Assembly: GCA_003693705.1 (NCBI GenBank) | Contig: RBZT01000259.1 | Coordinates: 1 to 64,000, forward strand | DNA from: Polymyxa betae A26-41 | Lineage: Eukaryota > Protista > Endomyxa: Phytomyxea | Length of the DNA stretch: 64,000 bases | Reading direction: 5' to 3' | Shown: positions 3,783 to 28,837 of the stretch, piece by piece | Layout of the letters: each line of letters begins with the position of its first letter | Numbering within the stretch: the first letter of the stretch is position 1 | Program-made: the position numbers and the translations under genes | The notes under the pieces: generated by a model | What the model was told of the DNA's origin: nothing | The model's input: only the letters and a program-made list of their open reading frames with translations | Database searches by the model: none

Positions 3783-4356
3783 TTATGCCCAATGACCACT
3801 ATAATACATCATCAGTTCTGGACTTCTTATGCATACTAGAAGAACTTACTGCTTGCCATCGGTCGCGCCGTCGTAGTGGTGCTCGCTGTAAGGCAAAGAG
3901 TCAGTATGGCAATTTGGAACAGCTGATGGAACACATACTGTTCACCCTCGGCGTCATCGTGGTATTCGTGGTCAGATTCTACAGAGAATACCATCAGAAA
4001 GGAGAACCAATTTACTACCATGTTTACCTTCACTGTCATCGTCGTGGTGATGATCATCATCGGATTCATGCTAAGCGAAAATTAGACCCATAAGGAAAAA
4101 GGAACTGTCTTACGTCGTGATGTCCATGGCTGTGAGCATGACCGTGGTGTTCTCGGTCGTGATGAGCATGGGCATCACTGTGAATGTCGTGGCTGTACAA
4201 CAACATCGTGAGCGATGCGAATGCGAGCAATGCCCGATCATTTTCTTACTGATCAATGTGACCGTCACCATGGAACACCTTCAATCGTGTATCACCAGCT
4301 TCGACTTCAACCAGGACCATCATGATGATAGTCATCGAGCCAATAATATGGTACAT
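3783..4356 (-). CDS. Secreted His/Asp-rich protein A (GDGHID family), 6 exons
   Basis: Hand-spliced: MYHIIGSMTIIMMVLVEVEAGDTRLKVFHGDGHIDHHDIHSDAHAHHDREHHGHAHSHGHHD-HESDDDHHHDDDSEE-SDHEYHDDAEGEH-EHHYDGATDGKH-GHWA*. It has five GT-AG introns. Confidence 0.8.
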
Positions 4357-4633
4357 TTTCACTGACGTGTTCATGTTCTTCGCTTCTGCAATAATCAGTG
4401 AATTGCGATGCGTTCTTGGTGGTTGCGAATTCGACCTCGATAAGCTTTTGATATTGGCTGAAGGGCTTTCTATTAGGCCAAATTCCGGTATTCATGAATC
4501 ATGTCGACCGAATCACTGAAATCTGGGACGTGACACACCCCACGGCTCCGGTTGTCTGGTGTCACTTCAACGTTTCCGACAGGATGCGGCAAGCAATATA
4601 TCTTTTGTCGAATTAAAGTCTGAACCTACCTCT

Positions 4634-5220
4634 ATGAAGAGCTATTTTGTTTTATTGATGATCTGGGCCTGCATCGCTTTGATAAGCAGGGCTGGCGAAA
4701 CCCGAATGAAGGTCTCCCATGGTGATGGTCACATTGATCAGTACGTTCGCTGATGCATCCATGTTGAGTTCGGCGTGTTAATGCTGTCTTAGTGAAGATA
4801 TCAGAGTTCATGGCGCTGAGGCCGAGCACGAAGAACACCATCATGGTGTTGCACACAGCAAAGGAGTCGAGCATGTATGTGTCTGCTGCAGCTTGGGTCG
4901 CTGTTTGATTTTTGATTCGTTATCTTATGATAGCATCATCACCACGAGGACGATGACGATGACAATGACGATTCAGATGGTCTGCAACCAAGCCCGATTA
5001 CAGTCTTGTTGCATTTACTCACGGTTTTGTACAGAGAGTTTGGATGAGTATGACGATGAAGCCGAAGGTGAACAGTAAGTGTTTTGAATATTGTTGTGTG
5101 CATTGCTGAGATAATGTGTAGCGAGAATTACTTCATCGGAGCGAGTGATGCTCTTCAGTAAGATGCAATCGCTCTGTTTGGCTGGATTGCCGTCTAACTG
5201 TGTACTTTAGTGGACATTGA
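4634..5220 (+). CDS. Secreted His/Asp-rich protein B (GDGHID family), 6 exons
   Basis: Hand-spliced: MKSYFVLLMIWACIALISRAGETRMKVSHGDGHIDHEDIRVHGAEAEHEEHHHGVAHSKGVEH-HHHHEDDDDDNDDSDE-SLDEYDDEAEGEH-ENYFIGASDALH-GH*. Intron positions and phases match protein A. Confidence 0.8.
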
Positions 5221-5532
5221 GGCTAAGCTCATTGATACTTCGAATGTACTGATGATACCAAATTTACATATTCTATTGATAAAATATCAGCTATGGTGTG
5301 CTGTATACAAGAATAAGTCATAACTAGAGAGTTTAGACCATAGTCATACTGTTTTTAGGATTGCCCGACCTCTTAGTCTTGGAGAAGCTACCCATTGTAT
5401 GCCGAGATTGCAAATTTTTAAAGCATTTTGTTCAAAGTTATTTAAACATCACGTTTCAAAGGCCATTTATTAAAGGATGGCAACGAAATTGAATATGTTT
5501 GACCATCTTGAACGGATCGCTGAAATTTGTCT

Positions 5533-26831: not shown

Positions 26832-28187
26832 TTATATTAATATGGTGATTAAGTCACTCTGTATTGGTTCAGAAGCAGTTCGCCTGCGCTTTGCCAACAT
26901 TTCGTCATCTAGGGTGTCATGATTGAGTTCGGCATTGGTGGCATTCAAAAATTTGACATTTCCTCCGAAAACGAATGACTTGTTATCGATGAACTTGGGC
27001 ATTGATCCATCCGGCAACAACCCAATCGGAATGCGCCTGCCGTGAGTAAACGCAGGCGTCCACCGATTCCTTACCGAGTCGTCATTTTCCACTTCATTTA
27101 CGAATTTCTCGATCCGATTCAGGTCTCCCAAACGACTTCCAAATCCAGGTTCGAGAAACGCAGACAACAACGATGATCCTTGCATGGCTTGATCGCCGAC
27201 CGAATACAACGCTCTCGAGGATGACATATTGGAACAGTATTCTTCAAAAGCACCGATTGTCAATGAACTTCTGGTCCGTAGGCACAAATCGATAACAGAC
27301 GATTGTGGAAGAGAGCAACGAGGAAGGCAGTAGGATAGCCATCGGCCAGCCAGAACTTGACGCCATTTACAGTCATTACGAGAGGTCTGAAACAGGCGCA
27401 GAACTATTGCCGACATAAGTTCAGGAAGGCGAGCTGCTAGATACGATAGAATATCGCTCCAGAGACTGGATAGCAAACCGAATGCAGAGTTAATATTGGC
27501 GACGGTCGGCTCGATACCAGATCGTGGTTGTCGTAGCAGGATATCGTTACCGGAAAACATATCGACGATGTCACTAATCCGGCATTGCTTGAAAATTAAT
27601 TCGAGAACCGATTCGAGCTTGCGATCGAATTCGTCTTGTTCGAGCTTTCGCCAGGATTTAGCTGCAGTCTGCAGGGCGGTGAATAAGTCGACAAAAGGTC
27701 GCGGTGCGGATTGCAGGTGTGATCGATATTGTTGCCAGTAGTGGTCATGGAGCCAATTTAGAGCACGTTGTCGGGTATCGAGTAATAGCTGTAATGAAGG
27801 CAGTTCGTTGTGTGTGGCGGCGTGACGGATCTCGACGAACGACAGTGGCATCTGCAGCGTGCGAGCGATTTCTCGAATCGACTTCGCATAAATCGAGTTT
27901 TGTTCACGATCGGCGATACCGTTTACTAAACGGACAATGATCATGGCGATCGCCAAACGAACTTCCGCCTTCGAAAGACGGTCGGCATCCACAATAGTTT
28001 CTAACAAAGCCGCTGTGATATCAACGGAAATCGGTAATGGACAACGTAATTGCCATGAACGGATAGTATCAATGGCAAATTTTGGCGAGCCGTGATAGGC
28101 GCTGAAATAAACGCGATCCCATTCGTCAAAGGATATCCATGGGACCAAGCGATGGCGCTGTATTGAACCAGGTAATGTCCACTCCAT
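26832..28187 (-). CDS. LAS1: Las1-like pre-rRNA HEPN endoribonuclease
   Basis: VPWISFDEWDRV, AMIIVRLVNGIAD, and the HEPN motif in IRHAATHNELPSL. Intronless. Confidence 0.9.
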   Translation of the reverse strand: MEWTLPGSIQRHRLVPWISFDEWDRVYFSAYHGSPKFAIDTIRSWQLRCPLPISVDITAALLETIVDADRLSKAEVRLAIAMIIVRLVNGIADREQNSIYAKSIREIARTLQMPLSFVEIRHAATHNELPSLQLLLDTRQRALNWLHDHYWQQYRSHLQSAPRPFVDLFTALQTAAKSWRKLEQDEFDRKLESVLELIFKQCRISDIVDMFSGNDILLRQPRSGIEPTVANINSAFGLLSSLWSDILSYLAARLPELMSAIVLRLFQTSRNDCKWRQVLAGRWLSYCLPRCSLPQSSVIDLCLRTRSSLTIGAFEEYCSNMSSSRALYSVGDQAMQGSSLLSAFLEPGFGSRLGDLNRIEKFVNEVENDDSVRNRWTPAFTHGRRIPIGLLPDGSMPKFIDNKSFVFGGNVKFLNATNAELNHDTLDDEMLAKRRRTASEPIQSDLITILI

Positions 28188-28453
28188 CACAGATCTAAAA
28201 CTGCATGCTTTGGTTAGGTCAAGGACTCCGTCGCGGCATTCTAACAAATTCCAATTCTGGAGTTTTCAGGCTAAGCTTCCCATCTCCTCAATACCATTAT
28301 CCAGGAAATATTGATATTGGTTTGATTCAACTTCGCTTGTTTGAACTTTGCTAAATCGGATCATGAAGGTGATCCGGTTTTCTACTTTCTACAAGAAGGG
28401 ATTCACGAAATGATGTTCTCAAAGGTTTATTCGAAAGAGACTTCAGCCGTCGC

Positions 28454-28837
28454 TTAGTGATGGCCATGATCGAATGGAGTTTCGAAGTCGCCATGGTGTC
28501 CGTCGTGGCCTTCGTGATGGCCTTCATGGTGATGCCATCCATCGTGCTCATCTTCACCATCATAAGTCTCGTGGAACAGGTTCTCGTGCTGTCCGAGACC
28601 GACATCGTTGTGGTGCCAGTCACCAAATTCGGTTTCGGCGTGCTGCTCTGATAGAGCATGGCCGGTGTGGATCTTGTCGTGGTGAAGGCGGGCCAGATCG
28701 GCGATACCGCCGTGGGCGCCAACTAGCTTGTTGTCAACGTGACCATCTCCATTTTCAACGTTGATAGCTGCGTCACCAGCTAGGGCTTGGTAGGAGGACA
28801 GGGCGACGGCAGCAAGGACGAAGAATTTTGACATCAT
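28454..28837 (-). CDS. Secreted His-rich protein F (GDGHVD family), intronless
   Basis: MMSKFFVLAAVALSSYQALAGDAAINVENGDGHVDNK...HHHEGHHEGHDGHH. Confidence 0.85.
   Translation of the reverse strand: MMSKFFVLAAVALSSYQALAGDAAINVENGDGHVDNKLVGAHGGIADLARLHHDKIHTGHALSEQHAETEFGDWHHNDVGLGQHENLFHETYDGEDEHDGWHHHEGHHEGHDGHHGDFETPFDHGHH

Follow-up and report, generated by a model that had tools for sequence, protein, structure and literature searches.

The first 64,000 nucleotides of contig RBZT01000259.1 of Polymyxa betae A26-41 (assembly GCA_003693705.1; the contig is C920 in our numbering and this stretch is called the window below) contain six small genes, named here A to F, that code for secreted, acidic and histidine-rich proteins. 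Four of them (A, B, C and F) carry, immediately after the predicted signal peptide, a 16-residue module that we have called GDGH after its most conspicuous residues, and four (C, D, E and F) are preceded by the palindromic element TGA(C/G)TCA, which is found also upstream of other genes for secreted proteins. The reading that we favor, and to which we assign a probability of roughly 0.42, is that they are co-regulated, plasmodiophorid-specific, disordered secreted polyelectrolytes that would capture and buffer metals at the parasite-host interface. Polymyxa betae is an obligate root endoparasite of beet. The plasmodiophorids are the cause of clubroot and powdery scab and the vector of rhizomania; to our knowledge their culture is impossible, and for most of the proteins that they secrete no function is known.

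Gene models and transcription

The genome searched comprises 27,085,814 bp in 1,001 contigs (the published draft is described as 1,001 contigs, 27,085,946 bp and a GC content of 45.1%; PMC6328671). All six gene models of the initial annotation stand, on the strength of open reading frames (ORFs), GT..AG introns and, for A, C and D, RNA. Genes A (3783..4356, reverse strand) and B (4634..5220, forward strand) are head-to-head paralogues of 106 residues each, with products that are 54% identical. Both have six exons (A: 4356-4250, 4192-4114, 4070-4028, 3978-3939, 3885-3850 and 3798-3783; B: 4634-4740, 4793-4874, 4934-4979, 5035-5074, 5122-5157 and 5211-5220), separated by introns of 43-59 nt that are all GT..AG and have identical phases (2,0,1,2,2). 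One spliced RNA contig supports the A introns 4071-4113 and 3979-4027, and the loose end of the same contig, which matches the end of exon 1, supports 4193-4249. The fourth and fifth introns of A were inferred from the reading frame and from paralogue B. A low-depth contig from one RNA library (run X2) is collinear with the window at 3699-3911, i.e. unspliced across part of intron 4 and across intron 5, which may be explained by pre-mRNA that is still unspliced, by DNA contamination or by an error in these two introns.

Gene C (5533..5922, reverse strand) is a single-exon ORF of 129 residues with unspliced RNA contigs in three runs. Gene D (7676..8524, forward strand) has two exons (7676-8212 and 8258-8524), and its 45-nt intron (8213-8257) has been removed in RNA from three runs belonging to two studies; contigs from two studies cover both C and D. 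Genes E (18060..18647, forward strand, 195 residues) and F (28454..28837, reverse strand) are uninterrupted ORFs. The window sequence is present in root metatranscriptomes and at least three of the six genes (A, C and D) are transcribed, so that the transcripts proposed as a check in the initial annotation are there for these three; B has none in the runs examined. For A, B and D the database searches described below used single exons, the joined translations serving only for length, composition, charge and the comparison of A with B.

The GDGH module and the families

The module starts at mature residue 1 and has the consensus G-(D/E)-(T/A)-x-(I/V/L/M)-x-V-x-(H/N)-G-D-G-H-(I/V)-D-(N/H/Q). The 17 sequences aligned, which represent three genera and metagenomes, all have G1, V7, G10, D11, G12, H13 and D15. 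It extends over 16 residues in C (5824..5871, reverse strand) and F (28730..28777, reverse strand). In A (4252..4296, reverse strand) it corresponds to the first 15 mature residues and stops exactly at the exon 1 boundary, as it does in B (4694..4738, forward strand), so that exon 1 of both genes is exactly leader plus module. The four strings quoted earlier for this motif, directly after the cleavage site, are exact in A, B, C and F. A profile of leader plus module retrieves exactly six genes genome-wide, these four plus G (at 92 kb of the same contig) and H (contig C598). A degenerate DNA pattern for GDGH(I/V)D matches seven times in the 27-Mb genome (zero in the control) and six of the matches are the family members. 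The seventh (C645:41279-41296) lacks a leader and follows a stop codon by seven codons; we have rejected it as a chance occurrence, about what is expected in 27 Mb. Codons of the motif vary among the paralogues at third positions that leave the residue unchanged, so it is the protein that is constrained, and within the GDGH family this start of the mature chain is the sole sequence held strictly.

A, B, C and F, together with G and H, are thus one family, while D and E, in which the module is absent, are separate families that have the same architecture in common. The initial annotation had spoken of one family of six, and this has to be corrected to three families, D and E having their own orthologues in Plasmodiophora brassicae. 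Inside the GDGH family several subtypes can be told apart: the intron-rich pair A/B, a C subtype with a conserved helix-like segment at the C terminus, an F/G subtype with a conserved region of about 75 residues containing invariant His, Gly, Ser and Asp, and an H subtype with Gly/His/Asp repeats. In the D protein the signal peptide precedes a conserved domain of about 70 residues, which leads into a His/Gly/Asp tail. D has three paralogues on contig C479; E is single-copy in the genome. Two further families of secreted His/Asp-rich proteins elsewhere in the genome are the orthologues of P. brassicae PBTT_08752 and PBTT_08746. Contig C479 is a second concentration of secreted His-rich genes, containing the three D-family paralogues and the PBTT_08752 orthologue (L026:1431-2132, L026:2499-3332, L028:3990-4601 and L035:1210-1548, all on the forward strand), each with TGA(C/G)TCA sites 36-166 bp upstream.

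We have also compared the module with the EF-hand (DxDxDG) loop, which has acidic ligands at positions 1, 3, 5 and 12 and helices on either side, and it does not fit. With G12 at loop position 6, position 1 is occupied by the invariant Val and position 3 by His/Asn; positions 5, 6, 8 and 9 alone fit, and there was no EF-hand match in Pfam.

Composition and disorder of the mature chains

The mature chains of the six genes contain 15-30% His, 21-34% Asp+Glu, 2.8-6.1% Lys+Arg and no Cys (the lone Cys of B and that of D both fall within the signal peptide). They have no hydrophobic segment of the transmembrane or glycosylphosphatidylinositol-anchor type and no N-glycosylation sequon. The leaders are hydrophobic with small residues at -1 and -3, in agreement with the signal peptide followed by a His/Asp/Glu-rich, Cys-free chain that had been described from the sequence. 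Against a median His content of 2.4% in the open frames of at least 80 residues in the window, the mature chain of E reaches 30% and includes three perfect 15-nt repeats encoding DYGHH. The only His-rich frames of the window are the six genes and their own alternative frames. At pH 7.4 the calculated charge is -19 to -36. At pH 5 it is close to zero or weakly positive for five of the proteins, B staying negative, and the switch falls between pH 5 and 6.5.

Structure prediction points to intrinsically disordered chains. AlphaFold2, run on family alignments, gave a mean confidence (predicted local distance difference test, pLDDT) of 45 for the F type and 48 for D, too low for a fold search. In the ESM Atlas the pLDDT was 0.26, with no feature neighbor at 0.9 or above. 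A complex prediction with two copies of residues 1-75 of mature F plus zinc scored 0.00 and gave no answer, neither for nor against. The tails are extended by short tandem repeats and barely align between orthologues, yet they are His-rich in both, so that selection acts on composition.

Distribution, orthologues and synteny

A profile search of 1.84 billion protein representatives returned 12 matches and a word-indexed search of 5.8 billion clusters returned 10. The named relatives come exclusively from P. brassicae or Spongospora subterranea, the remainder being unnamed metagenome or Logan contigs, and by these searches the GDGH family appears confined to plasmodiophorids and these environmental contigs. 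It has six members in Polymyxa and at least five in P. brassicae. Two of the relatives (P0006, residues 1-89, and P0014, residues 1-106) have long N-terminal extensions before the Met that starts a normal signal peptide and module; the source annotations have probably placed the start codon wrongly, and one of the two records bears the label 'mitochondrion'.

The orthologue of C in P. brassicae is PBTT_08747 (P0002), retrieved with an E value of 7e-8 and matching 26 of the first 28 mature positions. The orthologue of D, which adjoins that of C, shows 45% identity over 103 residues (E 5e-26), and that of E preserves an 18-residue core (E 3e-13). Between orthologues, the module and the ends of the chains are nearly identical. 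In P. brassicae the orthologues of C, D, E and a mucin-like gene, plus two more His-rich genes, lie within 12 kb. The F orthologue (PBTT_06342) adjoins a cyclic-nucleotide-binding (cNMP)/ion-channel gene, as F does here. The order from this channel gene to the F-type gene (23909-28837 in the window) is kept in P. brassicae, and in Polymyxa Las1 (26832-28247) stands between them.

The claim that these proteins belong to no named family holds, and they match no characterized family. Pfam has no family for any of the types and gave only compositional near-misses (e.g., the His-rich loop of ZIP transporters, E 0.78), a PDB profile search gave zero matches, and all relatives in the databases are labelled 'uncharacterized'. 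A protein homologue search with exon 1 of D found nothing, which has little weight given the length of the query and the word limits.

A structure-guided secretome study of 2025, based on SignalP6 and DeepTMHMM and covering P. brassicae, S. subterranea and P. betae, does contain these proteins in its supplements, as sequence clusters 63, 167, 476 and 477 (the GDGH family being clusters 63 and 476), with pLDDT of 40-62, mostly flagged 'Disordered' and uncharacterized (PMC12503489). Its text is silent on histidine-rich proteins and on the GDGH motif; with a pLDDT cut-off of 65, the proteins were missed because they were filtered out at low model confidence (PMC12503489). We infer from unique similarity and gene order that its entries poly_jg7876, 7874, 7865 and 7840 correspond to C, D, F and G, and the presence of these entries and of the orthologues in that secretome agrees with the secretion signals seen here. 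We found no paper tying plasmodiophorids to histidine-rich proteins. The P. brassicae gene identifiers appeared in no main text and are absent from the supplements of PMC4471660, PMC6604361 and PMC8256667.

Abundance data are available for the F-type orthologue of Spongospora (A0A0H5QQ93, P0007): in infected potato roots its DESeq2 base mean is 35,439, and it differs between cultivars with a log2 fold change of 1.58 (adjusted p 0.03; PMC8471823 Table S3). The maximum among about 135 other transcripts sampled from the same table was 11,224. The protein is not listed in the supplements searched for a Spongospora sporosori proteome, a weak negative since the chains offer few tryptic sites, as follows from their low content of Lys+Arg.

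A promoter element shared with other secreted-protein genes

When the 200-bp upstream regions of the eight Polymyxa genes were compared by k-mers, TGAGTCA stood out, being present in six of them; in 200 random sets no 7-mer was common to more than four. In the window TGA(C/G)TCA is rarer than expected (8 sites versus 12.7), and all eight sites are located 63-160 bp upstream of the start codons of C, D, E, F and a secreted mucin-like gene. At C there is one site (6018..6024), 96 bp upstream of the ATG and outside the RNA contig, which ends at 5941. Pairs are found at D (7553 and 7577, spanning 7553..7583; 123 and 99 bp upstream of the ATG, the RNA contig beginning at 7658), at E (17939 and 17957, spanning 17939..17963; 121 and 103 bp upstream) and at the mucin-like gene (two TGAGTCA in 21368..21401; 90 and 63 bp upstream of the signal-peptide exon, whose ATG is at about 21458). 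At F, a TGACTCA (28997, 160 bp upstream of the ATG) is flanked by TGATTCA variants at 28984 and 29024 (28984..29030 overall). G has two sites and H three, at similar distances. The 277-bp divergent promoter between A and B has at its center the variant TGAATCA (4495..4501, 139 bp from both ATGs), a sequence that occurs 25 times in the window, and this single copy is suggestive only.

The same arrangement is found in the other genus. At the syntenic locus of P. brassicae, where the mucin-like gene is again syntenic with the His-rich genes, eight of eight sites fall 74-192 bp upstream of six secreted His-rich or mucin genes (2.7 sites expected; none of 100 shuffles reached eight), and none was found at five housekeeping genes. 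Three further family members of P. brassicae have the site at -165, -213 and -129, which makes nine out of nine genes examined. The element is therefore enriched over chance and conserved in orthologous promoters, as is required of a bZIP regulon of the AP-1/GCN4 type. As far as we have found, it is the first cis-regulatory element uniting a battery of plasmodiophorid secreted-protein genes, kept across genomes of 45% and 59% GC, and we found no paper on this element in plasmodiophorids.

Genome-wide, 87 pairs of sites 8-38 nt apart were counted (one in the control), some of them in a dispersed repeat. Of 32 non-repeat clusters examined, 16 are followed within 350 bp by a signal-peptide-like ORF of at least 80 residues, a situation found in 2-6% of controls. 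The ORFs downstream of paired sites include a Kazal-type inhibitor (L013:1456-1917, forward), a PAN protein (L021:1472-1999, forward), a CAP/PR-1-like protein (L027:514-1242, reverse) and a weak B-lectin (L024:1355-1858, forward), as well as mucin-like and Pro/Gln-rich proteins, the three D-family paralogues and the PBTT_08746 orthologue. Taken together, these sequence patterns indicate that TGA(C/G)TCA probably drives a battery of secreted-protein genes, with a bZIP factor as its putative reader; the genome encodes at least four bZIP (bZIP_1) genes.

Some other occurrences of the paired element deserve mention. A 39-nt sequence bounded by TGAGTCA and TGACTCA is nearly unchanged on at least eight contigs (C32, C190, C245, C260, C439, C466, C467 and C475; for example at C32:130229-130267) and probably belongs to a dispersed repeat or mobile element in which the same bZIP-type sites are included. 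Another pair (TGACTCACGACATCAATGACTCA) is repeated on C86, C177 and C259. On C160, 265 bp from a TGA(C/G)TCA pair, there is a one-exon His-rich ORF of 75 residues (L016:826-1050, reverse strand) that starts with MGACC, a start that predicts N-myristoylation plus palmitoylation and no signal peptide.

Possible roles of the histidine-rich proteins

Judged from composition, metal binding by these chains is chemically very likely, and given their predicted secretion it would probably take place outside the parasite cell. With its imidazole and carboxylate groups, one chain would bind many divalent ions, of the Zn2+/Cu2+/Ni2+ class and perhaps Ca2+, and acidification would release the bound metal because the calculated charge switches between pH 5 and 6.5. 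The GDGH module, being invariant and having a fixed amino-terminal Gly and a G-D-G-H turn, may act as a specific handle, either as a defined metal site involving the free amino terminus or as a docking and recognition element. The TGA(C/G)TCA elements, via a bZIP factor, would drive the genes as part of the secreted-protein battery, and metals would be captured and buffered by this obligate intracellular parasite where it meets its host. The solubility of the chains, the lack of an anchor and the abundance in planta lean towards a diffusible binder.

Several observations weigh against metal capture and buffering. The content of the regulon leans instead towards a surface or matrix programme, which the mucin-like, PAN, lectin-like and CAP partners fit at least equally well. 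For every member the metal binding is a prediction from composition, and the module matches no known metal site, its likeness to an EF-hand being partial. No metal transporter adjoins the genes (a pairing of the Pra1-Zrt1 type was looked for and is absent), and there is no ZIP gene beside the P. brassicae orthologues. The high expression comes from one Spongospora orthologue alone, the canonical element is absent from the promoter shared by A and B, and B had no RNA cover. The neighbors are a membrane protein with weak DUF6691/YeeE-like similarity, a DUF72 protein, Las1 and the cyclic-nucleotide-binding channel. The first of these is a multi-exon gene located between C and D (6052-7436, reverse strand), with a weak DUF6691 (YeeE/YedE-related) match in its last exon only and no RNA cover in the runs examined; it is not a recognizable metal transporter.

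Next in order of probability, and in our opinion rather doubtful, is that the proteins form a metal-crosslinked matrix (the wall of the resting spore or cyst, the coat of zoospore or cyst, or the Stachel) held together by His-metal-His and carboxylate bridges, with the module as an assembly or anchoring element. The initial annotation had proposed a spore-wall or penetration-apparatus material of this type, and the regulon partners (mucin-like, PAN, CAP) are compatible with a surface or wall role. Co-regulation with mucin-like Pro/Thr- and Ser-rich, Pro/Gln-rich, PAN, lectin-like and CAP proteins argues for it, and so do the synteny with the mucin-like gene in both genera and the great abundance of one orthologue. 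At least five separate families with one composition and repeat-driven tails are what structural biomaterials look like, and His-rich proteins are known from Nereis jaws and from coccidian oocyst walls. The nearest ESM Atlas neighbors are arthropod His-rich and cuticle-like clusters, with scores below 0.9 that make them a lead only. The chains, however, lack Cys, a hydrophobic segment and any domain that could anchor them, whether chitin-binding or other, and their strong negative charge at neutral pH favors solubility. The abundant Spongospora transcript came from infected roots and not from purified spores, and the absence of its product from the sporosori supplements points in the same direction, weakly, since wall proteins extract poorly and tryptic sites are few. 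The more specific version, in which the His-rich families are the metal-crosslinked material of the resting-spore wall, which lasts for decades, or of the Stachel, with which the host wall is punctured, GDGH is the assembly element and the bZIP regulon is the building programme, we consider unlikely. If true, protists would have their first described His-metal biomaterial and these structures a first molecular handle, with a bearing on the persistence of spores in soil, the main obstacle to control.

The possibility that the proteins are effectors acting on the host, with the module as a lineage-specific tag for sorting, processing or host delivery like RxLR or PEXEL and tails that strip host zinc or bind host membranes at low pH, appears more unlikely still. 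It would explain the signal peptide followed by a short invariant motif and a divergent C-terminal part, the coincidence of leader plus module with exactly one exon in A and B, and the fact that four subfamilies have just the module in common. The regulon includes Kazal and CAP proteins, effector classes in other pathogens, and plasmodia sit in the host cytoplasm, so that secreted proteins reach it directly. Contrary to the fast-expanding effector families, this one is small, with 1:1 syntenic orthologues; its motif is right at the cleavage site and not 15-30 residues further along the chain, the uniform composition of the tails suggests a shared physico-chemical job and not diverse targets, and Polymyxa, which forms no galls, retains the whole set. 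A low-affinity, high-capacity store of Ca2+ or Zn2+ in the lumen of the endoplasmic reticulum, vesicles or a storage compartment would suit the acidic, His-rich and disordered chains, and is nonetheless improbable: the chains end in His-rich tails without an HDEL/KDEL-like C terminus, Pfam gives no match to the HRC repeat family, and the genes are co-regulated with clearly extracellular types of protein. Least credible of all is that these are meaningless low-complexity ORFs or annotation artefacts. Low complexity and the absence of RNA for B could be invoked, against the spliced transcripts, the orthologues with conserved ends and synteny in a genus of very different GC content, a module that is invariant despite synonymous changes, and the conserved promoter element; for A, C, D, E and F this explanation is effectively refuted. 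The order of probability for the role would thus be metal capture and buffering, then wall, coat or Stachel matrix, then host-acting effectors and finally luminal ion buffer. Whatever the role, the 16-residue signature is easily searched and could be used for raising antibodies, and in infected roots the transcript of one member ranks with the most abundant.

Comparison with known systems

The closest parallels to metal capture are Pra1 of Candida albicans and Aspf2 of Aspergillus, which are also secreted by a eukaryotic parasite, have a His-rich metal-binding region and are proposed to capture host metal. Pra1 is a folded protein of about 300 residues that contains the motif HRXXH and whose gene lies next to that of the partner transporter, ZRT1, whereas the Polymyxa proteins have no Pfam match, no fold and no adjacent metal transporter; the Pra1/Aspf2 family (HRXXH-type domain) was not matched in Pfam up to E 1 by C, D, E, F, G, H and their orthologues. 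HRP2, HRP3 and KAHRP of Plasmodium falciparum are similarly His-rich and sent out of an intracellular protist parasite, the HRPs being very abundant and binding metal or haem. Unlike HRP2, with its Ala/His/Asp repeats and PEXEL, the chains described here are rich in Asp, Glu, Gly and His, with irregular tails and a different N-terminal module. Tandem repeats of the HRP2 type and PEXEL are absent (the repeats found here are short and different), and no sequence relation to the HRPs appeared among the 1.84 billion representatives.

In the jaw proteins of polychaetes (Nvjp-1 of Nereis, and those of Glycera) His makes up about 25-30%, a defined fold is lacking, and the working principle is the metal-His crosslink. 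They are Gly/His-rich and far less acidic, with no homology to the Polymyxa proteins. HRC of the sarcoplasmic reticulum resembles the Polymyxa proteins in that its signal peptide leads into a disordered chain, acidic and rich in His, and it buffers ions at high capacity; it is large and retained in the lumen, while here the HRC repeat family is unmatched in Pfam and there is no C-terminal retention signal. The RxLR-dEER, PEXEL and CRN LxLFLAK families share with the GDGH family a signal peptide, a short conserved N-terminal motif, a variable C-terminal part and a restriction to one lineage. The GDGH motif differs from theirs and starts at mature residue +1, and the family is small, orthologous and syntenic.

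As for the promoter element, it is the identical palindrome recognized by AP-1, GCN4 and Yap bZIP factors, often paired here 14-45 bp apart and located upstream of the transcribed region. What sets it apart from the known AP-1/GCN4/Yap systems is its target set, a battery of secreted-protein genes in a rhizarian parasite, read by a putative bZIP factor.

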